From sequence record MK308676.1: a DNA stretch of 64,000 bases. The stretch is one strand, 5' to 3'. Made by a program: the position numbers and the translations under genes. Under the pieces are notes generated by a model that saw only the letters and a list, made by a program, of their open reading frames with translations, was not told the DNA's origin and searched no databases. Positions 4,834-59,773 of the stretch are shown one piece after another (position 1 is the first letter of the stretch; each line of letters begins with the position of its first letter).

Positions 4834-4923
4834 CAGAAATCTCCTCATCAGGAGTAAGCCCTCGCCCTAAGGACGCTCGAACGTCCTTAGGGCATTCTGC
4901 TTTTTATCTAAAGCATCGGTATG

Positions 4924-4935
4924 GTAATATAGGTT
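4924..4935 (-). promoter_or_regulatory. phiKZ-type early promoter (AACCTATATTAC)
   Basis: Exact TATATTAC, the published phiKZ early consensus; intergenic; upstream of the minus-strand cluster. Confidence 0.75.
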
Positions 4936-9133: not shown

Positions 9134-9182
9134 TCTATCATAACTTACTCTCTCAGCGAATATGCTGAGAGAGGAGTTATTT

Positions 9183-9671: not shown

Positions 9672-9960
9672 AGTAAATGGGGTTTCTATCTGCACTAAGA
9701 TAGAAAGAGTAGTCATTGGGGACTATGGCGCTTATGTGGAAATAGCACCCGATAACTTCATGGGCCCAATGGATGTCGCTAAAGGACAAGAGTGGCGTTT
9801 AGATAAGGACTACATCGAGCGAGCCGGACTGAGCATTAAGTACTTGTGGTATGAGTGTTTAGGTAAGAAGCTTTACTTCCAACTGGATACCGTGAAGTAT
9901 GCCGATTATAAGCCTGGCTTTTATTACATTTCCGTACTAGATTTTGATAAGGTGAAATAA
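9535..9960 (+). CDS. Conserved phage hypothetical protein (ERVVIGDYGAYVEI motif)
   Basis: GAGGGG SD before ATG 9535; overlaps the upstream ORF by 137 nt. Confidence 0.7.
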   Translation: MFTLKSYLDALGKHRKYRPLPKSLKGRHYAVYARALNSFPQRESFKVNGVSICTKIERVVIGDYGAYVEIAPDNFMGPMDVAKGQEWRLDKDYIERAGLSIKYLWYECLGKKLYFQLDTVKYADYKPGFYYISVLDFDKVK

Positions 9961-15962: not shown

Positions 15963-17009
15963 ATGACAAGTAAAAAAGTAAGAAGCATGGCTTGGTTCCG
16001 TGATTACTTTTCAGATGCTAATTCTGGAGTAGAGAATGGGATACCTGACGGTTTCGAAATCACAAGTGAAAACGGTGCATTTACCATCGTTAAAATTGTA
16101 GGCGAGGACAGACACGTTCTTGGCTCCATGGGTATGGAAGAAAGCTTCTTCCGAGACTCCATACGTACGGGTTCTTCTTCCGTACAAGTAGGTGGTCGAC
16201 ACTCCATGGGGTCGGCAGGTGAAAATGCCGGCTTCATTAATCTACATACAAACATTTTTTACCATCCGGGATTATGGCACGGAATAGGCATCGATGGAGA
16301 AGACGACTATTTAGAAACCACTCGACATCTAGAAAAACTAGAAGAAGTGCAAACGGACGCGGGCGGCTACGGTAGTCTCTTTATCGATTACAACTTTTTA
16401 GCTAATCCGTTCTCTTTTAATTTCTGTCTTCATCGCGTCAAGTTTTGGCCTGAGGCGTACCGCGGTCGCATTGTTTGGGAAACCATAATGGATGGCGGTG
16501 AGGTATCGAAGGCTTATGCAGACATTGATACTGATGGAAACACAGAATATGTCTTGCAGTTACCGTATCCGATTTTTGTCCCCAAAGGTAAAGCGGTTAT
16601 TTATCGTGTAACAAAAGAAAACGGCGCATATCTAAGAATAAAGAACGGGGATACTGACCCAGCCGTAGGTATGCGTACTGGCTATCTAAGACGATACGAT
16701 GACTACCAGGCGATTAATGGCTATTGTTTTATAACTGCTTCTGGAGATTATCTCCATAATGCACATCACTTGGTAGATGCTTCGGGCGGTGCCATTGTTG
16801 TCGACGTTGAAGACAATAAACATTTAGCGGCGTTCTCAATTAGGGACGCTAACGGCACCATAGGCGGTGCCAACACTTTAGAAATACAGTTCGGCGGACA
16901 AGGTTCTGTTAACATTGTTAACCCTAATCACTATTATACTTTTGTTAAGGATAAAGCAGGCGAGTGGTGGGCACTCAATGAAATTACCGGAGTCAACCGA
17001 AAAGTTTAA
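15963..17009 (+). CDS. Putative virion/fibre-associated protein
   Basis: First gene of the fibre operon; AAATCTTCTAG motif at 15882; N-terminal RSMAWFR. Confidence 0.6.
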   Translation: MTSKKVRSMAWFRDYFSDANSGVENGIPDGFEITSENGAFTIVKIVGEDRHVLGSMGMEESFFRDSIRTGSSSVQVGGRHSMGSAGENAGFINLHTNIFYHPGLWHGIGIDGEDDYLETTRHLEKLEEVQTDAGGYGSLFIDYNFLANPFSFNFCLHRVKFWPEAYRGRIVWETIMDGGEVSKAYADIDTDGNTEYVLQLPYPIFVPKGKAVIYRVTKENGAYLRIKNGDTDPAVGMRTGYLRRYDDYQAINGYCFITASGDYLHNAHHLVDASGGAIVVDVEDNKHLAAFSIRDANGTIGGANTLEIQFGGQGSVNIVNPNHYYTFVKDKAGEWWALNEITGVNRKV

Positions 17010-17032
17010 CCCTGTAAAAACGGAGTCGGTCC

Positions 17033-17956
17033 ATGACAGACACTATTATTATTACCTTAGGGGCTGATGTAAAAGCAGCCCAAGATACTGTAGGCGATGC
17101 GGACAGTGGACTGGTAAAGCAAGTTAATGACCTTTCCGGTCAATCCACTTCTTTTCTCGTTGACCGAAGTGACAGCAGTCAAAATTTGGACACTTACCTT
17201 TCCCCAGGACGGTTTTATTTAAGTGCCGTCGATGACGCCCCATCCGCACTAGACGGTATATCGGAGTTTATTCTTAGCGTTAAGTCTGGACCTGTCGATG
17301 AAGACCATTATGTCGTTCAAGAAATTTCAGGTCTTAACAATTCGGACAATGCGCCAAAGCTCACCAGAACTATTTTTGTAAATGCCGATGGCAGTTTAGG
17401 CCTAATCGGCTCATGGCGAGGCGTAGGCACAACCGTCGACATGGAAACTGCCATTGCTAGCCTAGATATTAAAACGCGTTATCCCGAAGTTACTGTCGGC
17501 AAACAATGGTCTTCTACTGAAACAGACGACTATGCAGATATTTTAGTGGGCCAAGAACTTTCCCCTAATTATACCGGCATTACTTTTGATTTGGAACTAC
17601 GTACTCGTTTAAACGGCGGAGATTATCAGTGGGCTCTTTATGCTACTCCGTCGGGTGGGTCGGTTAACACAACATGTTGGTTTGCGAGAACCAGTGACCT
17701 GGGCACAGGTGGCGGTACACAGCGCGAAGCTATGACTAGCTATGTTAAGTTCAACCGTAACCAAAACTCGCGAGTGGCTGTAACGGGCTGGCAAGATATC
17801 GACAACCCTACAATCTTTACCTTAGTAGTTTCTCGCCACGGTAGTACCGACCCTGACGCTACGATTATTAAGGGTGAGTACATGTTTAACGATTCGGACT
17901 ACGGAATACTTAACTTCCGTGTTGTGGGCGTTAATGAAAACAACATAACGATATAA
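17033..17956 (+). CDS. Tail-fibre/receptor-binding paralog 1
   Basis: Conserved N-terminus DTIIITLGAD...VGD..SGLVKQVNDL, a (D/N)L...PG.FY...AP fibre repeat, then a unique C-terminus. Confidence 0.65.
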   Translation: MTDTIIITLGADVKAAQDTVGDADSGLVKQVNDLSGQSTSFLVDRSDSSQNLDTYLSPGRFYLSAVDDAPSALDGISEFILSVKSGPVDEDHYVVQEISGLNNSDNAPKLTRTIFVNADGSLGLIGSWRGVGTTVDMETAIASLDIKTRYPEVTVGKQWSSTETDDYADILVGQELSPNYTGITFDLELRTRLNGGDYQWALYATPSGGSVNTTCWFARTSDLGTGGGTQREAMTSYVKFNRNQNSRVAVTGWQDIDNPTIFTLVVSRHGSTDPDATIIKGEYMFNDSDYGILNFRVVGVNENNITI

Positions 17957-17965
17957 GGAAGCATC

Positions 17966-18895
17966 ATGAGTGATACAATCGTCCTAGGACTACAGGCTGA
18001 CGTAGATGCCCTTAAAACTACCGTAGGTAACAATAGTTCAGGCTTAGTGCAAGCCGTCAACCAGTTAGAGTCCGAAGGCGGAAGCGAAATTACAGACCGC
18101 ACTGGCGAAGTAGTAAACTTGAATAACGAGTTAAATCCTCAAGTGGCTTGGTTGTCTGAGGTTACTAATCTCCCATCGGATGCCCCTACTACGGGAGCGC
18201 TCTATCTCTTGACAATAGAGGGCGTTCGAGACCAAGCCGAACAAACCGTGAAACAAACGGTTTCGCTCTTCATGCCAGGCAATGATTTCCCAGAAGGTCA
18301 ATGGTCACGTCATGTCTACTTTAGTGGAAATGCCGTGAGTGGACGTTCTGATTGGCGAACGGACCTTTTCACTGGCCCTCAATTGGACCGGTTCAGTATT
18401 TACCATGAAGAGATAGCACGATATTCCGGTAGACTTGTTGCAGCCGGTACTTCATCTGAAAACTTTAATTCTCAGTTTATGGTTCCAGATACTAAAATTG
18501 GAAATGACAGTTCGGAGTTTAACATTCGTATTGACTCTTTCCTTTCAGGAACAACTCCCGGTATTCGTATCTCGGCCGATAGTGCTAATACATGCAACTA
18601 TTTCATGGGCTATATGCTGTCTAACGACTACGGTGCTAATGACACAGTAGAAGAGCAAGCCTCTGAACATTACGGTTCCATGACGCGAAGTCGCGATACG
18701 CGAGAATATAAACTAGGCCCACACGCCTCACGTCGTAGCGTTTACTTTAGAATCGTAATAGGTCGCGGTGGCGGTAACAATAAAGAAAACATGGTTGTCG
18801 AAGGCAACGTTACAAGAGGCGAAACAGACAACGAAGTTGTCTGGGCTTGTCGTGTGGTTTCCAATAGCAAAAATAACGAGGTAGTCGATGTCTAG
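17966..18895 (+). CDS. Tail-fibre/receptor-binding paralog 2
   Basis: N-terminus DTIVLGLQAD...VGN..SGLVQAVNQL is paralogous to 17033. Confidence 0.65.
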   Translation: MSDTIVLGLQADVDALKTTVGNNSSGLVQAVNQLESEGGSEITDRTGEVVNLNNELNPQVAWLSEVTNLPSDAPTTGALYLLTIEGVRDQAEQTVKQTVSLFMPGNDFPEGQWSRHVYFSGNAVSGRSDWRTDLFTGPQLDRFSIYHEEIARYSGRLVAAGTSSENFNSQFMVPDTKIGNDSSEFNIRIDSFLSGTTPGIRISADSANTCNYFMGYMLSNDYGANDTVEEQASEHYGSMTRSRDTREYKLGPHASRRSVYFRIVIGRGGGNNKENMVVEGNVTRGETDNEVVWACRVVSNSKNNEVVDV

Positions 18896-19838
18896 TCCAG
18901 ATACAATCGTCATAAGTACCAAGTCTGACTTTGATGAGGTAAATACCGACATAGGTGATGCGGCAGCCGGATTAGTTAAAAGAGTCAACGACTTAGAGCT
19001 TTCTGGTGGCAATAAGCCTTATGAGAAACTTACATCGAGTTTAGATTTAAACTCGCTACAGGAAGACGGCGGATATTTTGCTACGGCCGTGACGAACGGT
19101 CCTCCGATGACAGCATTTGAAAACACGCACTATCCAAACTTTATGATTGAAGTGTCGTCTACCGCATCAAGCGGTGCGCGCATCATGAAAAAGAAACTCT
19201 ATTGGATATCTGTTAACGGTTTTCAGGTTATATGGCAAAGAACTTATTCAGTGGCAGCAGATGACACCGTTACGGCGGACGATGACTGGGAAGAAATAAT
19301 ACAGTCTCAATATTCTGGTTTACCGCGCGGAAAAGAATATGAGCTCGATAAGATGGAAAGTGGTGGCATCATAACTTTCACTACCAGCGATAACTTAGAA
19401 AGAACCGGATGGCTCTTAAGGAACTTTAGTTCAGCCATTACCGCTAACAGCGTACCTGCCTTAAGTATCCGAGTTAGATATCGTTATAACTCCGATAACC
19501 AGAGACAATATAAACTGGAACTGGTTACAGTGGCCGATTGGCTGGTTGCCTCAGCGTCTCTTTCTATAGGAGAAGCTACATCAACGGGTTCCGGCTCACA
19601 TACCGAATTCTGCGATGAGTCATCTAGCATTGTACGTAACAACAATGAAATGGTTCTTTTCGACTGGATGGATTCACGTCGTGCAGTACACGGGACCATT
19701 ATGGTTGTTAACAACATCATTTCTGTTCCTACATCTGTGACGTTAGAACTCACTACATACATTATCGACACCAACCGGGTGGCGTTACATGTTCGTGAAG
19801 TTTCAGCAGACCAAGCCGAACTAAGTTACCTACCATAA
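18888..19838 (+). CDS. Tail-fibre/receptor-binding paralog 3
   Basis: N-terminus DTIVISTKSD...IGD..AGLVKRVNDL; DLNSLQEDGGYF...NGP repeat. Confidence 0.65.
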   Translation: MSSPDTIVISTKSDFDEVNTDIGDAAAGLVKRVNDLELSGGNKPYEKLTSSLDLNSLQEDGGYFATAVTNGPPMTAFENTHYPNFMIEVSSTASSGARIMKKKLYWISVNGFQVIWQRTYSVAADDTVTADDDWEEIIQSQYSGLPRGKEYELDKMESGGIITFTTSDNLERTGWLLRNFSSAITANSVPALSIRVRYRYNSDNQRQYKLELVTVADWLVASASLSIGEATSTGSGSHTEFCDESSSIVRNNNEMVLFDWMDSRRAVHGTIMVVNNIISVPTSVTLELTTYIIDTNRVALHVREVSADQAELSYLP

Positions 19839-19846
19839 ATAAAAAT

Positions 19847-19886
19847 AGTATCTCTCTGTTTCGGTAGAGAGATACTAATCTTTTTT
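19847..19886 (+). terminator. Intrinsic terminator
   Basis: AGTATCTCTCT-GTTTCGGT-AGAGAGATACT followed by a T run. Confidence 0.75.
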
Positions 19887-19982
19887 AACAGGTGCCTTTA
19901 ATAAGAGACAAATCTTTTAGAGAGAACTCTCTCCAACAAACCACCACACACGTCTTTAAGACAATATAAGGGAAGCTTAATT

Positions 19983-20504
19983 ATGGGTTTCACAACAGTT
20001 TCTAATACTGCCTTTTTCGGAGGAGGCGGTGGTCCTGGCGGCGATGATGCGGGCTATTCGCGTGTTTCATATTCGGCCGATGCGCGAGATATTAGCGCAG
20101 ATACTTGGACCGGTCTTTTTCCCGGAGGCACGGTGCTCTCCAATGAAAGAGGCATGCCGGCAGGCGTCTCCGGTATAATCAACCCTAGCGGCATCAATCC
20201 GGGAACATTATCCGTAGATGACGTAATGGATTTTGAAGTTAACTTCTCTGTTACGCCAGAAATAAATAACTGCGATGTAAAAGTCCGCCTCACTTTCACC
20301 CGAGGTGGCGAAACCATAACCTTCGAAGAAGACTTAGAAAAACTAAGCAAAGGTGCTGGTGAAGAATATTCATTAAAAGCCGGATGGACGCTTCCGTTTG
20401 AAGACAGCGACATGATAGGCAATCCAGTTAGTGTTGAAGTTTTAACTTCGGCGCCATGCGCATTAAAAACAAAAACTTGCGTGGCGTACCTAACAAGAAC
20501 ATAA
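19983..20504 (+). CDS. Putative virion beta-sandwich protein with Gly-rich hinge
   Basis: GGGGGPGG linker; AAATCTTTTAG motif at 19910. Confidence 0.6.
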   Translation: MGFTTVSNTAFFGGGGGPGGDDAGYSRVSYSADARDISADTWTGLFPGGTVLSNERGMPAGVSGIINPSGINPGTLSVDDVMDFEVNFSVTPEINNCDVKVRLTFTRGGETITFEEDLEKLSKGAGEEYSLKAGWTLPFEDSDMIGNPVSVEVLTSAPCALKTKTCVAYLTRT

Positions 20505-20714
20505 CCACAAAACATTTAAAAACATCTCCTGGGATTTCTTTTTTCATTCCTTTTAGGTTACGACTTTCTAGTAACCAACAATTCTTTTATACTATAACCC
20601 TTTTCCTTTTTTCCTGTGAGAAGTGCTATACGTTTTTCCCTAACTATACCACTATTGCGCTCTTATTGATAAATGATAAGATTCTTCAAACCTTTCTCTG
20701 TCGAGGGGCAAAGA

Positions 20715-21890
20715 ATGAATATTAAAGTTGAAGTAGGTACCCTAGTTACACATCTAACGATTGGGTCAATTGTACTTAACGTCACGGGCTCTACGCATGA
20801 ACTCGTTGACTTAAGCGGGGATAATTCTGGCGACCCCGTGACGATACGTCGCAAAGACAACCAGCAAAAAGAAATTAAATCGGCAGCTTTGTCCGACTTT
20901 AAACAAAGCGATGGCTCCACTGCCCTCTTAACAGAAACAGGCATTAATGGCTTTAATGAACTAAAAGGCATCTTGTTTGACGACAATGCTTTGGACGCCA
21001 GCGACATTGAAGACTTTACGTCCGCTGTTCAAGCTGTAGCGGGTTCAGGCGGAGGAACGTTCCCTTCTAGTGGCGATGCAGGTACCCCGGCGGATTCTAC
21101 AGTCAGTCCTATTACCGGTAAGACCTTTGGTGACATCCAAGGTAAAGGCGTTGCGGAAGCAATCATGGAAGCATGGTTCCCTTCTGTTGTTCCCAACCAA
21201 GTAGCGCCTATTTTAGGTTTCACGTCTGGCTTAACAACAGCCGTTCTGGCCGGCAGCGATGTTTCTATGAATCTAGAATGGGCCTTTACGGCCAATGATT
21301 CTCAGGGTAAAACACCAGACCCTTATGTTTTAACTGCTGCACCTGGCGTGGGAGCACCGACGGTTCTTAACCCGGCGGATACGGATACGATTGCCACTTT
21401 AAACTTAACCGACGTAACTTCTAACTACGTTATAAGCTTGGAAGGCGACTATTTAGAAGGTGTCGTGCCTCAGGATAATTACGGAAACGACCAACCGGGG
21501 TCGCGTTTACCTGCCGGTACAGCTCAGACTAGCTTTACGCTTATTCCTTTCTGGAAAACTCACCACGGCCTAGTAGCGACAAATACAGTTTTAGAAACGG
21601 ACTCGGCGCTTCTACGTACCCAGCTGAATAACCTATCTGGGGAACAACAAGGAGCTATGACGTCTTTCTCTAATTTGACTATCGGCGCAGGGCAAGATTA
21701 TCTAATTTGTATCCCTGGCACATACACTTCTGTAAATGCCGTCCGTGCCGGTTTCCCGGTTAACATCGCGTCAGTTGAAGGTCAAATCACGCCAGATAAC
21801 TACGCTGGGAGCGGGACCAATACATACACCGTTATACGCATCGAAGGACGGGCCGCTGACTCTGTTATCGATACATTGACTATATCTTAA
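20715..21890 (+). CDS. Putative virion fibre/adhesin protein (start MNIKVEV)
   Basis: GAGGGG SD before ATG 20715; Thr/Gly/Asp-rich beta composition. Confidence 0.6.
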   Translation: MNIKVEVGTLVTHLTIGSIVLNVTGSTHELVDLSGDNSGDPVTIRRKDNQQKEIKSAALSDFKQSDGSTALLTETGINGFNELKGILFDDNALDASDIEDFTSAVQAVAGSGGGTFPSSGDAGTPADSTVSPITGKTFGDIQGKGVAEAIMEAWFPSVVPNQVAPILGFTSGLTTAVLAGSDVSMNLEWAFTANDSQGKTPDPYVLTAAPGVGAPTVLNPADTDTIATLNLTDVTSNYVISLEGDYLEGVVPQDNYGNDQPGSRLPAGTAQTSFTLIPFWKTHHGLVATNTVLETDSALLRTQLNNLSGEQQGAMTSFSNLTIGAGQDYLICIPGTYTSVNAVRAGFPVNIASVEGQITPDNYAGSGTNTYTVIRIEGRAADSVIDTLTIS

Positions 21891-21900
21891 GGAGCTAGAC

Positions 21901-22704
21901 ATGTATATTGAAAAGTTTCCAGCTGCCTTTGAACCTTCCGTAAATGTACCCTTAGACAAAAGAACTAAGATAGCTGACATTACTTCGGCAGATGCCGTTT
22001 TCTTGGCAACAGCCTATGTGGGCCTTGTTGTTTATGATGAGGCTACAAGTACTCTTTTTAAAATCACTTCGACGGACGGCACACAAGACAACTTGACTTA
22101 TGAAGAGTTAGGTGGCGGCTGAGTACCTACGTATTTTGCCGGACTTAGAACCACTGCTGACGAAGTCACTATGTCTGCTTCTGGGTTTGAGGCACTCGCC
22201 CACGGCGGGGCTAAGCAAAACCAGGTCTTTTTCGATAGCGGGGAGGATGACCTAGGTGACCTCATTACTGCTCAGCCTATGTTGGCAACTATTCCTGCCG
22301 GGAGTTATAAGGTCGGAGACCAAATCCGTATAAAACGCGTGATGACCATTACGCCTCAAGTTAACGGTACTCGCGGCACTAAGAACGCATACCCTACGGG
22401 GGCAAGTGACCAATACGCCTTTGTTGTAGAAAATCCGCCTAGTTCTGCGTTCGAGTTAGGTTCTGGAATTGGCGGCGATACCCATCTATACCCTCGTATC
22501 TTTAAAGAAGGCGCCGGGTATTGGGTAAGTAACCTAGGACATTCGCATGTAGTTGAAATTAACCACGGCCATGAGGCTAGTTTCTCAGGCTATCAAACCA
22601 CCATCAACGACTTAACTATTTCTTACAAGAAAGGGATGAGTCAGGCGGAAATTGATTTAAGGCAACCTACGTACTACTGTAATACCTTTATGGTTATTTA
22701 CTAA
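21901..22704 (+). CDS. Putative fibre protein; one reading frame interrupted by a single TGA at 22120-22122
   Basis: Track ORFs 21901..22122 and 22171..22704 are in frame and joined by 16 sense codons; no clear SD at 22171. Confidence 0.6.
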
Positions 22705-27406: not shown

Positions 27407-28648
27407 ATGACAATGGATATCCGCGAATCGATTAATGCCGCACTAAATGCTAATCGCCTAGAAAACGCTGAAACATTTACTGTAGCCGAGACTCAGCAAC
27501 TTATGACTGAGTTCACTACTCTAGCTAAAGAACACTTCGAAGCATCTAACGTTCTAGCTGCTCTTGAGAGACTCATGGTTGAGTCTAAAGGTGCTAAGCC
27601 ACAACTTGTACTGTCACAAGCAAACATGCTCTTAGGGGAGCGCTGGGAGCTTTCTCTACCTTCCATGGAATCGTACGACGAACTAACTACCGAAGTTGCA
27701 ATGGAAGGTATTGTGGATGTCGGTAAGAAGATTCTTAAGTTCGTTAAAGACACAGCTAAGTCACTTAAGAAGAAAGGCAAGGTGTTCTTCCGTGCTTTAG
27801 GTAACCTATTCCGTAACGACTACCAAATCGCTCAAGACGTTCTAGCGGAGCTAAATGGTAAACCTGACTTTAAAGAAGGCGAACTTAGCTTTAGCGACGG
27901 TGGTCAATTCTTCATGGGTGAAGGTGTGGAATACCGCACTGCTGCTGAAGTAGTGACTGCGATGGCTTCTAACATTCTTACTCTAGACGCTGAGCGTTTT
28001 AATAAGCTATTCTCAGATGCAGCTAAAGCAGTAGCATTTGCTGAGAACGATGCGGCCATGAATATCAGTGAAGTTACTAAGCACTGCATTGAGACCATGA
28101 ACCTCAATCATACTTCTGACCACGATGAGAAAGCGTACTACATCACTGACGGTAAAGTACCAGGTAGCTGGAAATACAGCGCAGTAACTGAGAAAGCAGT
28201 TGTGGGCGGTCAGATTGCCGAATTCCTTATGGAAGGCGACTCTATTCTGCCGCGCCGTCGCGGTGGCATTAAGATGCAGGCGATGACTGAAGAAGAAGTA
28301 CGTGCAGTTTGTGACGTAATCATGAAGTACTCTCAGCATGGACAGAACTTAGTTTCCGTTATGGCTGACCGTTACTGGGATACTGTGGCTTACATGGATA
28401 AAGTAGATAGCTCCATGTGGGAAACTCACGAGTACACGGATTACGAGAAAGACGAAGATGGTAACGATGTAGAAATCACTACGACCATCACTTACGACTT
28501 AGCTCGCAATGAACAACACTGGAAAGCATACGTTCGCATTTCTAATGTGTTCTGGGTAACCATGCATTACCTAAACGCTCTATTCAGTCACGCTAGTAAC
28601 TGTAACAAAGCAATGGCCGAAATGGCTCAGTCTTCTTACGAAGTATAA
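27407..28648 (+). CDS. Inner head protein (phiKZ gp93/gp162/gp163-like) with cleaved propeptide
   Basis: Glu-rich N-terminus ending PSMES...EVAMEG (gp175-type S/A/G-X-E sites), followed by a basic segment. Confidence 0.75.
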   Translation: MTMDIRESINAALNANRLENAETFTVAETQQLMTEFTTLAKEHFEASNVLAALERLMVESKGAKPQLVLSQANMLLGERWELSLPSMESYDELTTEVAMEGIVDVGKKILKFVKDTAKSLKKKGKVFFRALGNLFRNDYQIAQDVLAELNGKPDFKEGELSFSDGGQFFMGEGVEYRTAAEVVTAMASNILTLDAERFNKLFSDAAKAVAFAENDAAMNISEVTKHCIETMNLNHTSDHDEKAYYITDGKVPGSWKYSAVTEKAVVGGQIAEFLMEGDSILPRRRGGIKMQAMTEEEVRAVCDVIMKYSQHGQNLVSVMADRYWDTVAYMDKVDSSMWETHEYTDYEKDEDGNDVEITTTITYDLARNEQHWKAYVRISNVFWVTMHYLNALFSHASNCNKAMAEMAQSSYEV

Positions 28649-33142: not shown

Positions 33143-34423
33143 TTAACCTCTTAAATATTTGCGAACGAAATCTACTTCGTTAGTTGCAGTGTTGAGTACC
33201 TTATGGCGCAGAATGTGATTACAGGCTTGTAGCTGGGCCTTATGAATGAGGTCCGGCACAGACTTCTTGTTAGCGCAGTTTTCTGCAATCGACTTTGAGT
33301 CCACGCCCTTGAGTTGTTCAACGGCCTCAAAGAACAAGTAGACTTGCTCATAGCGCTTACTTTCAAACTCTGCGATTTCTTCCCGCTTGTGTCCTCGGCC
33401 TCGAGCATCTGAGATACACACCGCCATGGTGCCCGCCAATAAGCGAGGGTTCTGAACCGCACGGTGCTCTCGAATAATCTCTAAGAGTTTCTTCTTAGTT
33501 ATTTGAGAACCTTTGGTCGTCGACTGGTGAATCTTAGTGTGGTTCTTACAGGCAACTAGCGCTAGCTTACGATATTGACTAGGCACTTTCCAGTCATCGC
33601 AGAACTTCTCGATTAAAGGAAGGCCCACCTCAGCATGACCGTAAGCATTGCCTCGTTCTCTATAGCAAGAAGGCTTCCCAATGTCGTGTAGGAACGCGGC
33701 TAACGTGACTTTAGGACAACCGAAGACCTTAGCTGCATAGTCCGTGACAAGTCTCGTATGGTTCGCTACGTTGCCTTCTGGGTGGTGTTCTAGATTCTGA
33801 GGTGTATCTTCATATTCTCCCCATAGACCATAAGCACCGACATCAGAAAGGAACTTGAAGAACGTAGAAATAGAACCGCCATGGACGATAACCTTTTCGA
33901 GTTCTCGCCACCAACGTTCCCGTGATACTTCTTCTAGATGCTCAGAAGCGATACGACATTCGCGGTAAAGTTCTGCTGTAGGCTCTAGGTCATAAAGAGC
34001 TAAGAAGCGAGCAGCACGCAGGACACGAAGTGGGTCTTCATGGAAATGTTTACCGATAGGACGTAGCATGCGTTGCTCTACGTCTTTAATGAAACCATGT
34101 GGGTCGATGAACTCTTCTTTCTCTTCGTCATACGCGATAGCATTGATGGTGAAGTCACGGCGCAACAGGTCCTCTTCTAACGTAACGCCTTCCCAGTTAC
34201 AATCGAAGCCAGTATGACCTACACCTTCTTTCTTATCAGTGCGGGCAAGGGCGTGCTCGTCACCGTACGCATCCATAAAGACAGGGAAGTCTTTACCGAT
34301 TTGTATAAAGCCTTGACGGACCATCGAAGTAGGGGTTTCATTAATAACCACGTAGTCCACGTCTTTAGGTTCAAGTCTCATTAACTTATTGCGGCACCAG
34401 CCACCTACTATATATTTTTCCAT
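33143..34423 (-). CDS. cca: CCA tRNA nucleotidyltransferase with HD domain
   Basis: YIVGG, KDVDY, EEDLLRRDFTINA, EDPLRVLRAARF, HHPEG and LHDIGK. Confidence 0.92.
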   Translation of the reverse strand: MEKYIVGGWCRNKLMRLEPKDVDYVVINETPTSMVRQGFIQIGKDFPVFMDAYGDEHALARTDKKEGVGHTGFDCNWEGVTLEEDLLRRDFTINAIAYDEEKEEFIDPHGFIKDVEQRMLRPIGKHFHEDPLRVLRAARFLALYDLEPTAELYRECRIASEHLEEVSRERWWRELEKVIVHGGSISTFFKFLSDVGAYGLWGEYEDTPQNLEHHPEGNVANHTRLVTDYAAKVFGCPKVTLAAFLHDIGKPSCYRERGNAYGHAEVGLPLIEKFCDDWKVPSQYRKLALVACKNHTKIHQSTTKGSQITKKKLLEIIREHRAVQNPRLLAGTMAVCISDARGRGHKREEIAEFESKRYEQVYLFFEAVEQLKGVDSKSIAENCANKKSVPDLIHKAQLQACNHILRHKVLNTATNEVDFVRKYLRG

Positions 34424-44245: not shown

Positions 44246-44775
44246 AGTTCCTCCGTCAGGAATTCAATTTTGTTTCGGAATCCCGACGTTAGGATTTCGA
44301 TGTTAGAAGAATACTTCTTAATGCGACCGAATTCACCAGTCTCAATAGAAGCGTTTAAGTTACGTGAACTATCAGCCACCTTAACGATGCGGGTAACCGG
44401 GCGGCGCTTGAGCATTACCATCTGTCCTTCATAAGGCTTGCCGCCTAAGATGTTCGCGTAATCGATTAAGTCAGGATGCACACCCATTTCGCGTAAATAG
44501 GTTTGACATTCCCAATGGTGCTCTACAGCATCATGGATGTAGCCTAAAGCTTTCAAGAAGAAAGAGGCATCGCGAGGTAAAGCCTTCTCTACCATGGAAA
44601 AGACCGCTTCGCCTACATCACGTACGTGGTAGCTAAATGGTGCGTTGCCGTATTTCTCACCCGCATGTATTTCTAAAGCTAGGCGAAAACAAAGTGCGGC
44701 TTGTTGGGAAGGCTGGTACTTCTTACCTTCTCCCCAATCTTCGGGCACCCAAGTAATCAATTTAGGGTCAATCAT
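44242..44775 (-). CDS. Stand-alone HD hydrolase (RelA/SpoT HD, Mesh1-like)
   Basis: H.G.KYG..PF.YH...V, IHDAVE and VKVAD..N. Confidence 0.75.
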   Translation of the reverse strand: MIDPKLITWVPEDWGEGKKYQPSQQAALCFRLALEIHAGEKYGNAPFSYHVRDVGEAVFSMVEKALPRDASFFLKALGYIHDAVEHHWECQTYLREMGVHPDLIDYANILGGKPYEGQMVMLKRRPVTRIVKVADSSRNLNASIETGEFGRIKKYSSNIEILTSGFRNKIEFLTEEL

Positions 44776-45503
44776 TTTTCCCTCATCTCCTTTATGCGTT
44801 GTTCTGCGACCTCATCCCAACTAGGCATCTGAGCTATCGCACCTTTAGTAGACATGGCCCATATATAAGAACTCTCACGCTGGTTCTCATCAAAGCCTTC
44901 TAAAGAACCGTGCCTTAAGATGTAACGAGCACGGTAGTAATCGCGTACGCCAAAACCTTCAACAGGGTCCGGGCACACGGCTTGGTCTAAATATTTGAAG
45001 TAGTCAGATACGCTGTCGTCAATGACCACCCAGCGTTTAATAGATGGGTTCTCACGGAGATAGTCGTCTACGCCTTGCTCTCTTGAACTTAACTCCGTAC
45101 CATACCTTTCTTCGATGCGCCACGGCTCACCTTCGCCTTTATTGCGTAAAGTGATAGAACTAAAACCAAAGGCCTCATGTAGCTTACTCGCGGCCAGCAG
45201 AGTCTTCATGTGACTCTTCCATACCGAGACATAAACTATGCGAGCATTGTACTCTTTGGCTAGGCGATTAATGAGACCTACGGCATAAGGGTCTATGCGT
45301 AAACCCATTAAGTGAGCTCGCTCTGTCTGCACGACTTCGTCCACATCTAAGAAGATAACTGCTTCACCGTCTCTTTGCTCGTCCATTATGTTTGCGAACG
45401 CAGAACGGAAAGCATTCTCGTAACCGTTAGCCAACATGTCTACAAGTTCGGGGTTCTCTCTTAGAAGTTCTTCGTACTTCTTTATTTCTTCGTAATAATC
45501 CAT
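44772..45503 (-). CDS. HAD-family phosphatase (Swiss-army-knife RNA-repair-like)
   Basis: IFLDVDEV (DxD), IVYVSVW and WVVIDD...PDP..GF. Confidence 0.75.
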   Translation of the reverse strand: MDYYEEIKKYEELLRENPELVDMLANGYENAFRSAFANIMDEQRDGEAVIFLDVDEVVQTERAHLMGLRIDPYAVGLINRLAKEYNARIVYVSVWKSHMKTLLAASKLHEAFGFSSITLRNKGEGEPWRIEERYGTELSSREQGVDDYLRENPSIKRWVVIDDSVSDYFKYLDQAVCPDPVEGFGVRDYYRARYILRHGSLEGFDENQRESSYIWAMSTKGAIAQMPSWDEVAEQRIKEMREK

Positions 45504-45578: not shown

Positions 45579-46565
45579 TTAATGTGAACTACGGTACTTG
45601 CGCACCATTAATGACGGGAATATGTAATCTGCATCTAGTAAAGACGGATGCCACATTATCCACGCTCTAGACTTTCCTAGATGGCGAGCCATGTCTGTTT
45701 GGAAGCGACTACCTTCATGCCAGTGGTCCGTAGAATAGTAGTTAGTTAGCGTAGGTAACTCACGCTTCTTCCGACAATCTCGAGCAGCGCAAGAAGCCAT
45801 GAGCTGAGTTTGCCAAGTAGCTAGGCCGTGGCGCGAATGCTCTATGTTGTCGACCGTTAGTCTTGCTGGGCTAAGACTGCGACACTGATTTATCGCCACC
45901 TCGTTATCATGTGAAGGCCAGTAATGTAAAGATTCCGTACCATTCTTCTTGGCCTTCTGTTCGAAACCACCGTAGAGAACAGTGTCAGCTATTTGAACGA
46001 GGTCCAGGTGGTCGGACATAGAGTAATCGAAAGCTTCGAATAGCCATTCAGGAACCGCTATAATCTTCTTCTTCAACATGGAATTGAAGTGATGTTCCGT
46101 TATCGTGCGGTTCGACTCCAGATAGACTTGAGTCACGTTAGTCTCAAAGAGGAGCGTATGTAACTCTAGTCCTAAACCCCATATCGTCTTACCGTCTTGT
46201 CGACCAGCTTGGAACCATACGTCTTCGAGGTGGTTGTCTACAGCATAAAGAATACCTAGTGTCTCTGTGCTGATTTTAAAGGGCAGGTATTCAGAGAGGC
46301 CCGGGTTATAGACTCGCAGTACCTCTCTAAAGAAATAGGTTTTATTTTCACGACACTCGAAAAAGATAATGCCTTTTTCTTGGTCAGTTAAATCTTCGGA
46401 CCAAGGGTCTAGCCCTATTGTTTCAGGGAACTTAACCCGTAAAGGATACTTGTAGTTTCCCACACGCATCTCTCTTAAAGTTTCCGAGAGAATGTTAAAG
46501 GAATGGTTAGAGGTCCCCGGATAAGAATACTCGCCGGCATTCGGATTGAAAGGTTTCAGTTGCAT
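45579..46565 (-). CDS. Truncated paralog of the phiKZ-type terminase large subunit (ATPase region only)
   Basis: LDP.S.DLT..EK..I..EC..N..YFFREV.R followed by GRQDGKT; 328 aa; GGAG SD at ATG 46565. Confidence 0.6.
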   Translation of the reverse strand: MQLKPFNPNAGEYSYPGTSNHSFNILSETLREMRVGNYKYPLRVKFPETIGLDPWSEDLTDQEKGIIFFECRENKTYFFREVLRVYNPGLSEYLPFKISTETLGILYAVDNHLEDVWFQAGRQDGKTIWGLGLELHTLLFETNVTQVYLESNRTITEHHFNSMLKKKIIAVPEWLFEAFDYSMSDHLDLVQIADTVLYGGFEQKAKKNGTESLHYWPSHDNEVAINQCRSLSPARLTVDNIEHSRHGLATWQTQLMASCAARDCRKKRELPTLTNYYSTDHWHEGSRFQTDMARHLGKSRAWIMWHPSLLDADYIFPSLMVRKYRSSH

Positions 46566-46644
46566 TGTTTTAACTCCGTCGTTAAACAAACTAAGGCGCG
46601 ATTGCCATTCTATTCTCAGGGAGAATAAAAAATAAAAGATGAGG

Positions 46645-46757: not shown

Positions 46758-47045
46758 TTAAAGGACGTATTCTTGACCTTCTTCGAGGCCGTGTGGCTGT
46801 TCAGTGATTAGGTAAGCTTGACGATTAACGAAGTAATGTCCCGGGACTACCAGCACGTTATCGTTTTCGTCGTCGATGTAAACGGTTAAGATATATTGGT
46901 TGCCTTTTTGACGTAAGACTTCGTCTACCTTTGCGTCGAGAACTGGCCAGCCGTAAACGGTCCCGTCGTACTCAACACCTTCGCCGTTCGGACAAGAAAC
47001 TAGCCCCTTAGTTAATAGGTATTCAAGGATGTCATCGATTTCCAT
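46758..47045 (-). CDS. Early hypothetical protein (95 aa)
   Basis: GAGGA SD, directly after an early promoter. Confidence 0.8.
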   Translation of the reverse strand: MEIDDILEYLLTKGLVSCPNGEGVEYDGTVYGWPVLDAKVDEVLRQKGNQYILTVYIDDENDNVLVVPGHYFVNRQAYLITEQPHGLEEGQEYVL

Positions 47046-47077
47046 AGGGTTTTCCTCTTACATTGATATTCACATAG

Positions 47078-47089
47078 GTAATATAGGTT
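47078..47089 (-). promoter_or_regulatory. phiKZ-type early promoter (AACCTATATTAC)
   Basis: Identical 12-mer to 4924-4935. Confidence 0.75.
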
Positions 47090-47101: not shown

Positions 47102-47112
47102 GAATCTTGTAG
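47102..47112 (+). promoter_or_regulatory. Putative late promoter (GAATCTTGTAG)
   Basis: Variant of the recurrent motif, upstream of the chitinase gene. Confidence 0.55.
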
Positions 47113-47159
47113 GGACGCTGTTCCTATAATGAACGTTCATTTTAATCGGGATTAAAGTT

Positions 47160-48920
47160 ATGTACGATAACAAAATCATTAGACTCGCACGTTATGCGGG
47201 AGAAGACTTAGAATTCATGCCGTGGTTCTTTGTGGACGACGACAGCGGAGTTACTCAGAAGGAAATCCCTGAGTTTAAGAATACGCTTTCGTTTGACGCG
47301 AACGATATCTGCGAGAAAGAAGGTAAACTGTACTACACAGAAGAAGCCTTAGCTCCGGCAGACTGGGACGACACTAAGTGGAAGGAAATCGCTGTAGTGT
47401 TGGCTTACTTAAACAACCACAAGACTTATCTGGAATACGAACTTGACTCTTTCGTTCTTCACGAAGACGTCATCTATAAGAACAACAAAGTAGTGTCTGG
47501 AGAGTTCAACAGTGCCGACTGGGACGAAGTAGATGTAAACACGCTTATTGCTGACATCTATACCTACACCGCAGCAGGTGCTTCTTTGGAGATTACTACT
47601 CTAGCTTCTATGCCATCAGCTAAGCTAGGTTTGTTCGCTCCTGAAATCGTGCTACCTACTCCAGGTACAGGTACGGCTTCATTCTTTATGTATTACCCTT
47701 CGTGGTCTACTCAGACGTTTGGTTTGGGTGATACAGACGCTGTATTGCGTAAACCGTCTAACATGCCTGACTATGTAACTCACACCATGTTGAGCTTTGC
47801 TAAGGCACATGGCTTTACGTTTGATAAGAGCTCCCCTGACATTGCTGAAGCAAACACGGGCTTGCAGTTCCCTGTAGGAATCGACGCAGCTATTCTTAAA
47901 GAAGATATCGCTAAAGCTCAGGCAGCCGGACAGAAGGTTTACATTTCAGTGGGCGGTGCTACTTACGGACGTGACGCTGGTCGCTTAGACCCATGGACTA
48001 ACATGATTACTGAGGCGAAGGACTTAATGTCAGGTACCGCATTTGATGCACTTACTCACGTTGAGACAGACGCATACATTCAGTTCATGGAGTACTTCGA
48101 GCTAGACGGTATCGACTTGGACTTCGAAGACAACCCAGCTTACCACAACAACGACTTTGTTGAGTACCTAGAGAACTACCATGCTCTCTGTTACCTGATG
48201 CGCTACATTGCCGATGCTGCGGCTACAACGCTCACTAAGACTGTTGAAACTGCAAGTGCTTGTTGGTCTACTGGTTTTGACCAAACGGCTCGCTCTAAGG
48301 CAGACACAAACACTCCTGGCGCAGACCATGAACTAATCGGTTACTTCGGTGACCATGCTGGTCGTGACCGTATGGCTTTCGGTGGTTTCACTGATAGTGC
48401 AGGCGATGCTCGGAATGCCGCACAATACATCGACAACTATATCCTTATGTCGTACGACGCGATGTTCGGTAATCATAAAGACGGTAACCCTGAAACAGAT
48501 TCAGATTCCCTTTATGACCCGGTCGTTTGTTACAACGAGGCACGTGCTATTATTCCGGCCTCTAAAGTGGTAGCTATTGGTTTAATTGCTGGTGACCACG
48601 GTTTCGGTGACCACTACCTAATGTTGAATGATGCTGACTGTTCTGATACAGCCCCTCATCAGACTCTATTAGAGAAAGACCAATATCAACGTTTCGTTAT
48701 GGCTCCTTATTCAGTAGAGCGCCTATGTCGTACGGTTCGTGAAAACGAAGTGAATGATAAAGACGGTTGCTTGATGTGGGCAGCATTTAAACTGCTCGGC
48801 GATGGTGCTACGTATGAGTTCGATGGAGTTAAAGCAGGTACTGTTACAGAAATCTGTGAGAAAGCTTCTTTAGAGTTCGGCGTCGGTACTGAAACTGGTT
48901 ACGTGATGGATTACGTATAA
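47160..48920 (+). CDS. GH18 chitinase with N-terminal CBM-like repeats
   Basis: LDGIDLDFE (DxxDxDxE), YYPSW, THTMLSF, KVYISVGG, MSYD and GCLMW, all in canonical order. Confidence 0.87.
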   Translation: MYDNKIIRLARYAGEDLEFMPWFFVDDDSGVTQKEIPEFKNTLSFDANDICEKEGKLYYTEEALAPADWDDTKWKEIAVVLAYLNNHKTYLEYELDSFVLHEDVIYKNNKVVSGEFNSADWDEVDVNTLIADIYTYTAAGASLEITTLASMPSAKLGLFAPEIVLPTPGTGTASFFMYYPSWSTQTFGLGDTDAVLRKPSNMPDYVTHTMLSFAKAHGFTFDKSSPDIAEANTGLQFPVGIDAAILKEDIAKAQAAGQKVYISVGGATYGRDAGRLDPWTNMITEAKDLMSGTAFDALTHVETDAYIQFMEYFELDGIDLDFEDNPAYHNNDFVEYLENYHALCYLMRYIADAAATTLTKTVETASACWSTGFDQTARSKADTNTPGADHELIGYFGDHAGRDRMAFGGFTDSAGDARNAAQYIDNYILMSYDAMFGNHKDGNPETDSDSLYDPVVCYNEARAIIPASKVVAIGLIAGDHGFGDHYLMLNDADCSDTAPHQTLLEKDQYQRFVMAPYSVERLCRTVRENEVNDKDGCLMWAAFKLLGDGATYEFDGVKAGTVTEICEKASLEFGVGTETGYVMDYV

Positions 48921-48925
48921 AGACT

Positions 48926-48955
48926 ACTCCTACCTCCTTTGCGGGAGGTAGGAGT
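48926..48955. terminator. Bidirectional terminator
   Basis: ACTCCTACCTCC-TTTGCG-GGAGGTAGGAGT between convergent genes. Confidence 0.8.
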
Positions 48956-48962
48956 TTATCTT

Positions 48963-50177
48963 TTATAGTACGTGACGTTTACACATGTCCAAGTATGCTT
49001 CGTACAGTCTTCCTTGGAACTCAAAGAAGTCTTGCGCTGCATAGATAATCTGAATGAATAGATTGTAAGAGATGTTCCCCAAATGACGATGTTGGTCTTT
49101 AGAGATTTCCATGTCTTCAGTTTTCTCTGAGTAGGTTTCCATAATAAGGCGACCTACGTCATCCATCATGCCCATGGCAGCGTGCCAGTTCTTGGTAGAC
49201 GTTAGCGTTGTACGCTTCATGTTGCTAAGCACAGACTTAAGCTCATTTGCAGATAGAGGAGCAATCTCTTCAACACCAGACTTACGAACTACATCATCGT
49301 TGTCCGTGTACCAAGTTACATCGCGTAGAACTAAGTAGTACTCGCTTAGAGTCGCTTTACGTTCTAGGACAGTCGCTTGTTGGAAGCCACCTGCTACGCC
49401 TTCACGCGTTGCGTAGAAAACATATGCTGGGTTCTTAGAAGAGTAAAGCTTCTTACCGTCTGCTTCAGATTGGCCAGTACGGTCCAAGTAAAGAGTCGCT
49501 GCTTGGCTAATTGAAAGTAGAGCAGACTTGTAATCAGGCCATTTATCTTTCTTAAGTTTAGCTAGGACTTCTTCGAATGCTTCGAAAGTCAGGTTACGGT
49601 TAGACATACCTGCCCATTCCGTTAATGCTTTCTCTACTTCGGTAGGAACGCCGTCAGCTTGGAAGTAAAGGCGCTTAGGTTTAGGAATCTTAACGGCTTC
49701 TTCCGTGATGTCGCCCTGAGACACTAGACGAGTAATGTCATCTAACTTACCGTCGAAGTCTTTAAACTTCATCGAGATGGCTTGGCCAATCTTCTTGATT
49801 TTCTTTTTAGCTTTATCTAGCTTATCGTTCCAGATAGCTTTAAGGGTATCGATAACAGAACCGATGCCTTCCATTGCGACTTCAGTAGTTAGCTCTACAT
49901 CTGACTCCATTGCGAAAGACTGTAGCTGTAGCTCTGGCGTGGCTTTAAGGATGTTGTTCGCAGACGAAATAAGCATCTCTGCGGTTGCGCCTTCTGAGTT
50001 ATCTTTCAAGAAGGTTAGTTCACCGATTAGCTTAGCAGCGTCACGGATTGTTTCGTTTTCTTCACGGCACTCCTGAAGGAATGCTTCCGCTTCTTCTACT
50101 GTTTTGAATTCACCAGTATCGAAAGAGGCGTCGAGCTCAGCTTGTTTTACCTGAGCGAAATGTTGTCGTAAACTCAT
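48963..50177 (-). CDS. Inner head protein, paralog of 27407..28648
   Basis: FAMES..ELTTEVAMEGI shared with 27407; similar length and architecture. Confidence 0.75.
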   Translation of the reverse strand: MSLRQHFAQVKQAELDASFDTGEFKTVEEAEAFLQECREENETIRDAAKLIGELTFLKDNSEGATAEMLISSANNILKATPELQLQSFAMESDVELTTEVAMEGIGSVIDTLKAIWNDKLDKAKKKIKKIGQAISMKFKDFDGKLDDITRLVSQGDITEEAVKIPKPKRLYFQADGVPTEVEKALTEWAGMSNRNLTFEAFEEVLAKLKKDKWPDYKSALLSISQAATLYLDRTGQSEADGKKLYSSKNPAYVFYATREGVAGGFQQATVLERKATLSEYYLVLRDVTWYTDNDDVVRKSGVEEIAPLSANELKSVLSNMKRTTLTSTKNWHAAMGMMDDVGRLIMETYSEKTEDMEISKDQHRHLGNISYNLFIQIIYAAQDFFEFQGRLYEAYLDMCKRHVL

Positions 50178-50460: not shown

Positions 50461-50562
50461 AGTAATTCTCCAATAAAATTTTTAATAAAGAAAGAACCAC
50501 AACCCGAAGGCTGTGATTCGAATTATGTTTAGAAAGTCACTATGGCAATATAGGTCACACTT

Positions 50563-53714: not shown

Positions 53715-54599
53715 TTATTGGTTGGCTACGAGCAAACTCATACGGCCAAACGTGTTACCGCCTACGATGCCATCCTGAACTAGACCTTCTTTAGCCTGGA
53801 AGGCCTTGATTGCAGTGAGGGTACGTTTTCCGTAGTGGCCGTCCACTTTATGTAGATAGCCGAGAGCTCGTAAATATTTTTGCACTTCTCTAACCGATTG
53901 TCCACGGTCGTTAAATCTCACAATCGGACGTTTGTAGATAGAGGAGTCTTCCAACATAATGCCAAGCGCACGGTTGGTCTTCGCGATACGGTCAGGTAAG
54001 CCGTGCTGTCCGCCATTAATGATTCGAGTCACCACCTTAGTCGCGCCTTCGTCCGCCCATTCTAATGCGGTCTTACCGTTGCGTTTGTTTGTTTTAAGGA
54101 ACCAACAAGCCGCCATAAGGCCGATAGCGGCATCATTGATAAGAACATTAGGCTGTTCTTCTAACTCTAGTCCTAGGGCCGTACCGGCCGCGATATAGTT
54201 ATTCTTACCCGTTAACTGGATTGGGCCACGGCCGCGATAAAGGTATCCTTCTCCTGGGGCATTGTTACCCATTCGTCCGCCATAGACAAAGTTGGCAATC
54301 TTCTCTTTCTGGCGATGATACTTCTTAGCCTGGCCTTTAGTTTTAAAACGGGATGGCCAGACCTTCATTAGAGTCTGCCAACTATAGTTCAAATTCTCTT
54401 CAAAGCGAACAAAGCCACCCGACTCATGCGCACACTGTCCGATAAGCATAGCCCAACGACGTACTGTGTTGATGCCTTGGTTTTCGATTTGCTTACGGAA
54501 CTGCATGACACTGTAAGCATATTCGATTGATGCACCGCAAGCGATAAGTGCCTCTACTAGGTTGTCGTTTGAAAGCGGGTCTTTCTTGGTCTGAAACAT
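53715..54599 (-). CDS. GH19 endolysin with C-terminal peptidoglycan-binding domain
   Basis: AHESGGF, ENLNYS, YRGRGPIQLTG.NNY and INGG..G; PG_binding_1 (DG.YG..T..AIKAFQ...GL..DGIVG); GAATCTTATG at 54622-54631. Confidence 0.9.
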   Translation of the reverse strand: MFQTKKDPLSNDNLVEALIACGASIEYAYSVMQFRKQIENQGINTVRRWAMLIGQCAHESGGFVRFEENLNYSWQTLMKVWPSRFKTKGQAKKYHRQKEKIANFVYGGRMGNNAPGEGYLYRGRGPIQLTGKNNYIAAGTALGLELEEQPNVLINDAAIGLMAACWFLKTNKRNGKTALEWADEGATKVVTRIINGGQHGLPDRIAKTNRALGIMLEDSSIYKRPIVRFNDRGQSVREVQKYLRALGYLHKVDGHYGKRTLTAIKAFQAKEGLVQDGIVGGNTFGRMSLLVANQ

Positions 54600-59551: not shown

Positions 59552-59761
59552 AAACATAGTTCCTGTGTTAGTTGTAAGTAACTTACTCCTACGGTGCGTC
59601 CACACCGTAGGAGTAACCCTCTTTCTGTTTTCTAGTTAACAGACAACTACAGAACAATCAATATATGTATACTCAAAAAGAAATACACCCATACTCCTAT
59701 CTGCTCGAGCAGATAGGAGGGGGATGTTTTAAAGGATTAATAGTAGAGTAAAAGCATAAAG

Positions 59762-59773
59762 ATAATATAGGTT
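59762..59773 (-). promoter_or_regulatory. Probable early promoter (AACCTATATTAT)
   Basis: 11/12 match to the 4924/47078 motif; intergenic. Confidence 0.65.

Follow-up and report, generated by a model that had tools for sequence, protein, structure and literature searches.

Why should a bacteriophage carry an enzyme of a chitinase family, and where would such a protein act? The question is raised by a single gene, at positions 47160-48920 of a 64,000-nucleotide stretch of DNA that is referred to here as the window. The window is identical to positions 226538-290537 of record MK308676.1 and makes up the last 64 kb of the genome of Vibrio phage vB_VmeM-Yong MS31. This jumbo myovirus, 290 kb in size, infects Vibrio mediterranei and is kin to phages BONAISHI and pir03 (PMC7765460). 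The gene encodes a protein of 586 residues, much of which is a domain of glycoside hydrolase family 18 (GH18). It is deposited as 'hypothetical' in every genome in which it was found, namely four Yong isolates, BONAISHI and sm033, and the deposited protein is 100% identical to the window's reading frame in 4/4 vB_VmeM-Yong genomes. A first-pass annotation of the window, made from the DNA letters, had recognized a chitinase here and guessed that it might ride on the virion and target chitin surfaces; its observation is confirmed, and its interpretation is partly supported. We put at roughly 55% the probability that the gene product is a tail-attached, tailspike-like glycosidase. The protein is probably a sugar-cutting spike borne by the particle rather than a free metabolic enzyme.

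The evidence that carries this answer lies in the N-terminal module. A profile of this module, built from 10 sequences (profile A3), was run against all PDB sequences. It matches 9RKV chain M, the tail fibre of phage 7-7-1, over residues 27-123 (E=2.5e-10) and 8FQC P1, the tailspike gp124 of Agrobacterium phage Milano, over residues 28-126 (E=7.4e-9). Weaker matches are made to the N-terminus of a long-tail-fibre proximal subunit (E=0.015) and to 2RTS, the chitin-binding domain of a chitinase (E=0.022). In gp124, residues 1-175 constitute a tail-binding module at the N-terminus that has been seen by cryo-electron microscopy, in which a 25-residue arm touches sheath and wedge proteins, the globular domains are wedged between baseplate wedge proteins, and the segment 100-115 contacts the wedge protein BW3 (PMC10811340). 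Two residues that are invariant in the module alignment, G114 and W121, sit in the stretch that aligns with this BW3-contact segment. The arm of the phage GH18 protein (residues 1-30) corresponds in position to the arm of gp124 but lies outside the profile match, and its L9 is invariant among the 10 sequences. Profile comparison thus shows the N-terminal module to be a homologue of a tail-binding module whose structure is known, and the virion association that had been guessed at first gains support from this homology and from the tail-fibre repeat of Yong that is described below.

Within the module lie two units resembling carbohydrate-binding modules of families 5 and 12 (CBM5/12). The two N-terminal repeats that were reported initially are real, and their assignment comes by an indirect route. 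The Pfam model CBM_5_12 (PF02839) finds no match on the GH18 protein at E<=0.1. The module profile retrieves multi-repeat proteins whose own PF02839 scores reach 111 bits, and a Foldseek search with the module returns structures labelled 'ChiA1-BD' together with CBM5/12 phage proteins. By transitive homology and predicted fold, the units of residues 35-125 are therefore CBM5/12-like, and they may have a role in tail attachment instead of chitin binding. The segment that follows, residues 126-170, is modelled poorly, with a predicted local distance difference test score (pLDDT) below 50 over residues 129-169.

The same module recurs elsewhere in these phages, often in the company of quite different C-terminal domains. 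In Yong its unit is repeated some 13 times in QAX96801 (P0022), a protein of 1444 residues whose PHROG match is 'tail fiber protein' (E=3e-43) and whose gene belongs to the tail-fibre and virion-structural gene block at 163.6-184 kb. In a metagenomic jumbo-phage contig (L003, ERZ28593557), an SGNH/GDSL esterase gene (8303-9976) lies directly upstream of the GH18 ortholog and has the same N-terminal anchor, with 48% identity over the first 172 residues; the two genes form a two-enzyme pair of putative spikes. Other C-termini are found on the module in BONAISHI ORF168c (605 residues), in pir03 ORF200 (6417 residues) and in two sm033 genes, and neither the C-terminal domain of BONAISHI ORF168c nor that of one module-bearing sm033 protein has a relative in the PDB. 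The heads borne by this module hence comprise GH18, an SGNH esterase, an unassigned domain of about 430 residues and a giant repeat protein. Head swapping on a conserved anchor is in this way shown among related phages, and such exchangeable heads are a modularity typical of receptor-binding proteins.

A further protein of the window has repeats of this kind. The gene at 14392-15801 (minus strand) encodes 469 residues with five CBM5/12-like units, as the first-pass annotation had described, and the last unit reaches 31.3 bits on Pfam CBM_5_12 against a cut-off of 26.2. The arm with which the anchor module begins is missing from this protein. Its gene adjoins that of a DEAD-like helicase, and the same position is held in BONAISHI by ORF168c, with anchor and unassigned head, and in pir03 by the giant ORF200. 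The accompanying proposal of a 'fibre block' at 15963-22704 found no backing from any structural PHROG or Pfam family match.

The head of the protein, residues 171-581, belongs to GH18 by several lines of comparison. All the hallmarks listed in the original description are present, namely DGIDLDFE on strand beta-4, SVGG at 263-266 (beta-3), MSYD at 430-433 (beta-6) and W540 (beta-8). Among 65 aligned near-full-length domains, conservation is 61/65 for D316, 62/65 for D319, 63/65 for D321 and 61/65 for E323; the corresponding figures are 64-65/65 for G265/G266, 63/65 for M430, 65/65 for Y432, 60/65 for D433 and 63/65 for W540. Taken alone, the protein scores 28.7 bits on Pfam PF00704, just under the cut-off of 29.6, and relatives within the same alignable family exceed that cut-off at 37-56 bits. 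A search of the PDB with the single sequence gave only E=0.6, and a 30-sequence family profile matched GH18 chitinases there, with 1ITX the best at E=4e-18. A word-indexed search retrieved just four relatives of the protein and a profile search over 1.84 billion representatives retrieved 712.

Structure prediction agrees with this assignment. The AlphaFold model made from the 30-sequence alignment has a mean pLDDT of 82, which rises beyond 90 for the greater part of residues 171-581, and it replaces an earlier, poor prediction from 4 sequences (pLDDT 47). The top 50 Foldseek matches in the PDB comprise nothing but GH18 chitinases and chitinase-like proteins (probability 1.00, E ~1e-10), including 4TXG, 6KXL, 8OYE, 5GZU and 6INX, at identities of 12-16% and target-normalized TM-scores of up to 0.57. 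The domain nevertheless forms a divergent subfamily: in the HMMER alignment an Ala follows SxGG where chitinase A1 has Trp, and family-specific conserved blocks occupy the second half of the barrel (S370/G372/D374, G401/R404 and S518/R521). No NCBIfam model matches the protein, PHROGs and PADLOC gave nothing usable for it, and a member of the subfamily with a measured activity was not among the hits found. A lone PADLOC match to the linker (E ~1e-3) was treated as chance. Judged by motifs and model, the GH18 domain looks catalytically competent, and the conserved catalytic residues make the head apparently active.

The cellular relatives of this domain bring in the main rival explanation. Species genomes of GTDB were scanned with two peptide patterns taken from a 4-sequence alignment, and relatives at 22-33% identity were found in Chthoniobacterales and other Verrucomicrobiota, in Armatimonadota, in Oligoflexus and in others, within ordinary chromosomal contexts. 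Their accessory modules (CBM2, ChitinaseA_N, FN3, CHB_HEX_C, Big_5 and CBM5/12) are typical of secreted enzymes that attack insoluble polysaccharide, most simply chitin, and the catalytic domain of the phage protein, by sequence kinship, is part of this chitinase-like lineage. The protein could accordingly be read as a soluble chitinase that is never part of the particle: made late, freed at lysis and kept on chitin through its pair of CBM5/12 units, it would serve as an auxiliary or 'exit' enzyme, loosening chitin-attached microcolonies of the host or freeing progeny. The resemblance of its relatives to secreted chitinases fits such a role, as does the fold of the N-terminal units, which is that of a chitin-binding module. 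The protein has no signal peptide or transmembrane segment, as had been noted earlier (the maximum 15-residue Kyte-Doolittle mean is 0.32 in the first 60 residues), and this would suit release by lysis; the gene, moreover, lies near PhoH and endolysin genes and not among tail genes. A prophage GH19 chitinase that aids growth on chitin has also been reported, according to a passage of bioRxiv 10.1101/2024.12.20.629349 that cites it.

Several observations speak against a soluble enzyme. The top matches of the module among solved structures are tail-binding proteins (E ~1e-9 to 1e-10), whereas the chitinase binding domain is reached at 0.022, and the module is reused with heads that are not directed at chitin and in giant fibre-like proteins. 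No Vibrio homologue was found in the GTDB species genomes by the two-pattern scan, from which very divergent copies could escape, and the nearest cellular relatives, in Verrucomicrobiota and other phyla, are about 30% identical. The phage gene is hence no recent metabolic acquisition from the host, and an origin as a host-derived auxiliary metabolic gene was rejected because that scan returned no Vibrio homologue. A scan of IMG/VR returned two loci only, of which one encodes GH5 fused to GH18 on a 68-kb contig assigned to viruses and the other lies on a giant-virus contig. Finally, relatives that are catalytically dead persist at full length. On balance we regard the soluble chitinase as possible and rather unlikely.

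These catalytically dead relatives raise a second alternative. Two full-length phage proteins (P0025 and P0029) have the same anchor and intact reading frames, and in both the acidic residues of beta-4, the Tyr-Asp of beta-6 and the Trp of beta-8 are replaced. P0029 is the positional counterpart of the GH18 gene in a syntenic 91-kb contig, where the same plus-strand gene comes first, then an internal-head-like gene, PhoH, a conserved gene and the GH19 endolysin. The lineage can therefore dispense with hydrolysis, and binding without cleavage is evidently tolerated in it; the altered proteins may be lectin-like derivatives. It might be supposed, then, that the window's protein is itself a carbohydrate-binding adhesin, with hydrolysis secondary or absent and with the barrel recognizing a glycan receptor as chitinase-like lectins do; non-catalytic chitinase-like proteins are indeed among the Foldseek matches. 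The window copy and most relatives, however, keep all the catalytic residues (60-65 of 65), which argues for selection on catalysis, and as an account of the protein of Yong the adhesin appears improbable.

A third possibility is an enzyme of entry or lysis that acts on the backbone of peptidoglycan, in which N-acetylglucosamine (GlcNAc) alternates with N-acetylmuramic acid. GH18, as defined in CAZy, does include lysozymes and peptidoglycan endo-N-acetylglucosaminidases. Jumbo phages, furthermore, commonly have several wall-degrading enzymes, often virion-bound, as the BONAISHI paper states with reference to Yuan and Gao 2017. Yet the phage already has, as first described, a distinct endolysin with GH19 and PG_binding_1 domains (53715-54599, minus strand), 4.8 kb from the GH18 gene, which is itself a single-gene unit on the opposite strand. 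The GH18 protein is without a peptidoglycan-binding domain, its gene has no holin or spanin neighbour, and its relatives combine the domain with binding modules of the chitin or cellulose type. The murein layer, moreover, would presumably be out of the reach of a peripheral spike. We consider a peptidoglycan substrate very improbable. Membership of the lysis cassette was rejected on the separate transcription unit, the missing peptidoglycan-binding domain and the distance to the endolysin.

The signals around the gene bear on when the protein is made. It is preceded by an exact copy of the motif AATCTTRTRGR, and a terminator-like hairpin follows it, so that the motif and terminator of its own that were first ascribed to it are both in place; the hairpin is common with the convergent gene 48963-50177. 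With at most one mismatch the motif has 13 matches in the window, a number no greater overall than chance. Ten of the 13 nevertheless fall in intergenic DNA, although this is only 6.9% of the window, and all 10 are co-oriented with a start codon that lies 18-69 nt further on. Because of this intergenic, co-oriented and start-proximal placement, the motif is held to be a genuine promoter-like element. In the window it also precedes the gene for the GH19 endolysin and those for two internal-head-like paralogues of about 400 residues, and elsewhere in the genome it is found upstream of one virion structural gene and one internal-head-protein gene. That the motif is common to virion structural and internal-head-protein-like genes favours a tail-borne spike, for which the above-average codon bias and the missing signal peptide are further hints, and 'late-type' expression of the GH18 gene, as first proposed, is plausible.

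In the mechanism that we propose for such a spike, residues 1-170, with arm, double CBM5/12-like domain and linker, would act as an anchor that docks on the baseplate or the tail periphery. Residues 171-581 would be the GH18 head, able to cleave a beta-linked GlcNAc glycan through a substrate-assisted retaining mechanism. The gene would form a transcription unit by itself, driven by a phage-type promoter of its own and expressed alongside several virion genes, and during adsorption the head would bind and trim a GlcNAc polymer met by the particle. This polymer might be a chitin or chito-oligomer surface colonized by the Vibrio host, or else a GlcNAc-rich polysaccharide of the host envelope. 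The chitinase-type relatives favour chitin or chito-oligomers as the likely substrate, and the SGNH paralogue, together with the likeness to depolymerase spikes, favours by analogy a host surface glycan.

A more specific version, which we hold to be unlikely, has an active tail-borne chitinase with chitin as the first and reversible attachment surface, by which virions would be retained, or moved, where Vibrio hosts concentrate. Virions would bind to chitin and would then be released from it enzymatically, and relatives lacking catalysis would be pure binders. Such a scheme would be the chitin analogue of phage adherence to mucus, and it comes close to the chitin-surface targeting that was first put forward. 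Among the other parts of that initial proposal, release of attractants and a functional link with the 14392-15801 protein or with a fibre block gained no support, and chitin as the substrate and movement along it stay conjectural.

A number of points weigh against the tail-attached spike. The window's sequence on its own does rank gp124 first in the PDB, but marginally (E=0.038). The fold of the module is also that of a genuine chitin-binding module in chitinases, and the module could bind sugar instead of the tail. About 90 kb separate the gene from the tail-fibre block, and it is surrounded by head-internal-like, PhoH and lysis genes. Its promoter-like motif precedes the DEAD-like helicase gene as well as virion genes, and is absent 5' of the tail sheath gene, so that the label 'late-type' holds only in part. 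The GH18 proteins of sm033 and of locus L031 are without the N-terminal module. In these two the GH18 gene is immediately downstream of a gene for a giant protein (2282 and at least 1885 residues, respectively), in which no informative Pfam match was found, and this neighbour may represent a different way to mount the enzyme. We know of no described tailspike with a GH18 TIM-barrel head, and none was found in a literature search that was not exhaustive. Presence in the virion is deduced from sequence comparison, and the oligomeric state, substrate and biological role of the protein we likewise infer.

With Milano gp124 (8FQC) and the 7-7-1 tail fibre (9RKV) the protein shares a homologous module in the same position, at about residues 27-126, even though the hosts and phage groups are unrelated to those of Yong. 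The likeness to gp124 extends to overall plan, with a tail-binding module of residues 1-175 and a distal domain in the one and a 170-residue module and a head in the other, and to length, at 587 and 586 residues. The distal parts differ, being a GH18 TIM barrel in the window protein and a beta-helix plus jelly-roll in gp124, and the spike of Milano is regarded as non-enzymatic (PMC10811340), unlike what is predicted for the GH18 head. The cysteines that link the arm of gp124 to the tail, Cys15, 24 and 26 (PMC10811340), have no counterpart, as the first Cys of the window protein is residue 51.

The tailspike depolymerases, which include capsule and O-antigen enzymes and SGNH-esterase spikes, combine a conserved N-terminal anchor with exchangeable carbohydrate-active heads, just as is seen here, and the SGNH type has a parallel in the paralogue beside the GH18 ortholog of L003. 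The heads known from depolymerases are for the most part beta-helix lyases or hydrolases, sialidase propellers and esterases; a description of a GH18 head was not found in the same non-exhaustive search. The initial statement that no characterized phage system resembles this one is fair as far as GH18 goes; phage-borne spikes that cleave polysaccharides, however, are well known, and a prophage GH19 chitinase has been reported. The bacterial GH18 chitinases and chitodextrinases (1ITX, 4TXG, 6KXL, 8OYE and ChiW, 5GZU) have the same barrel with SxGG, DGxDxDxE, MxYD and the beta-8 Trp, and their accessory modules are of the type borne by relatives of the window protein. They differ from it in sequence (12-16% identity, TM-scores of 0.5-0.57 on the target) and in the signal peptide, which is lacking here.

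Virus-encoded 'chitinase' auxiliary genes, which are mostly GH19, likewise place a chitinase-family gene in a phage genome, whereas the gene of the window has GH18 fused to a tail-anchor-like module. Whether viral chitinases serve metabolism or the viral life cycle has been discussed as ambiguous; most viral 'chitinase' calls are GH19 and endolysin-like, and GH18 is rare in viromes, with 14/487 chitinase-associated genes among 1.43 million soil viral genes (bioRxiv 10.1101/2024.12.20.629349). The analysis provides a functional handle on what had been entered as 'hypothetical'. Should the protein be tail-borne, GH18 would be a new enzymatic head among phage receptor-binding and depolymerase proteins, and jumbo Vibrio phages would have a physical tie to GlcNAc polymers, the central substrate in Vibrio ecology. 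More generally, a 'CBM5/12' annotation at the N-terminus of a phage protein can denote a module for tail attachment and not for sugar binding, a distinction of importance to surveys in which viral carbohydrate-active genes are tallied as auxiliary metabolism.

Table 1. Features of the GH18 gene and its surroundings, with related loci (positions are those of the window unless a locus is named; a dot marks a feature without strand).
Feature	Position	Strand	Basis or remark
Coding sequence, 586 residues: N-terminal tail-anchor-like module and GH18 domain	47160..48920	+	ATG start
N-terminal arm, residues 1-30; hydrophobic strand kept in relatives	47160..47249	+	low-confidence model
Two CBM5/12-like units, residues 35-125 (~35-80 and ~85-125)	47262..47534	+	profile A3
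Linker or second small domain, residues 126-170	47535..47669	+	alignable among relatives
GH18 (beta/alpha)8 catalytic domain, residues 171-581	47670..48902	+	motifs, profile, model, Foldseek
DGIDLDFE, catalytic beta-4 motif, residues 316-323; E323 predicted acid/base	48105..48128	+	sequence
Promoter-like motif AATCTTGTAGG, 46 nt 5' of the ATG	47103..47113	+	exact copy
Second promoter-like motif, GGTAATATAGGT on the plus strand, ACCTATATTACC on the minus strand	47077..47088	-	faces leftward gene 46758-47045
Perfect 14-bp palindrome AATGAACGTTCATT	47128..47141	.	between motif and start codon
Bidirectional intrinsic-terminator-like hairpin, 13-bp stem	48926..48955	.	common with convergent 48963-50177
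Full-length GH18 relatives, catalytic residues replaced, frames intact	L029 10001-11734; L030 2941-4590		
Giant proteins upstream of module-less GH18 genes	L006 696-7544 (sm033); L031 2-5659		gene adjacency

The gene stands apart in its surroundings. Between 22751 and about 60670 there are some 48 annotated genes, and only the GH18 gene and 27407-28648 are on the plus strand. On its 5' side a divergent intergenic region of 114 bp separates it from the leftward gene 46758-47045 (minus strand), and on its 3' side, beyond the hairpin, lies the convergent gene 48963-50177 (minus strand). No neighbour of the GH18 gene has a structural PHROG or Pfam match. The gene 48963-50177 and that at 27407-28648 are the two paralogues of about 400 residues mentioned above, with 38% identity over some 100 N-terminal residues, and they link to an expanded family of locus L029 (2090-9316 and 11782-12867) with weak Pfam phiKZ_IP matches. 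A role for the GH18 protein as a head-internal, ejected protein was rejected, as it is suggested by these neighbours only and the protein has no similarity to the internal-head-like genes.

Codon usage in the GH18 gene is biased moderately and above average. Its effective number of codons (Nc), 46.4, lies below the mean for the window of 52.3 (standard deviation 4.8), and its window-referenced codon adaptation index is 0.821, against 0.775 +/- 0.035. The earlier description of strongly biased codons overstated the degree; the Nc ranks 10/61. The strongest codon bias in the window is that of 48963-50177, with an Nc of 41.5.

The divergent intergenic region also holds a second promoter-like motif. 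With up to 2 mismatches GGTAATATAGGT has 11 matches in the window against 4.2 expected, and exact copies, at 4923 and 47077, each lie between divergent genes. In one orientation or the other the motif is seen at 4923-4934, 47077-47088, 50544-50555 and 59761-59772, where it heads leftward transcription units, and it is often back-to-back with AATCTTRTRGR in divergent intergenic regions. We infer from this a promoter-like function, and the motif may represent a distinct promoter class of the jumbo phage. The palindrome between motif and start codon has one copy in the window, a count not above chance.

Some further observations concern the genes around this locus. The XC31 isolate (MK308674.1) and MS31 are shifted by 2 bases relative to each other, the length difference falling between 50177 and 50272; no other coordinate shift was seen in the compared stretch. 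The gene 45579-46589 (minus strand) encodes about 330 residues and matches the N-terminal ATPase part only of large terminase PHROGs; its pir03 counterpart is annotated 'DNA-packaging protein: hydrolase', with its best match in phiKZ. A separate terminase-like gene is present at MS31 107034-109184, and the two could be a split or duplicated terminase. A HAD_SAK_2 domain, of the 'Swiss Army Knife' RNA repair family, is encoded at 44772-45503 (minus strand) of the window and at 2328-3581 of L003. Together with a CCA tRNA nucleotidyltransferase gene at 33143-34423 of the window, it hints at a set of genes for RNA repair or tRNA maintenance.

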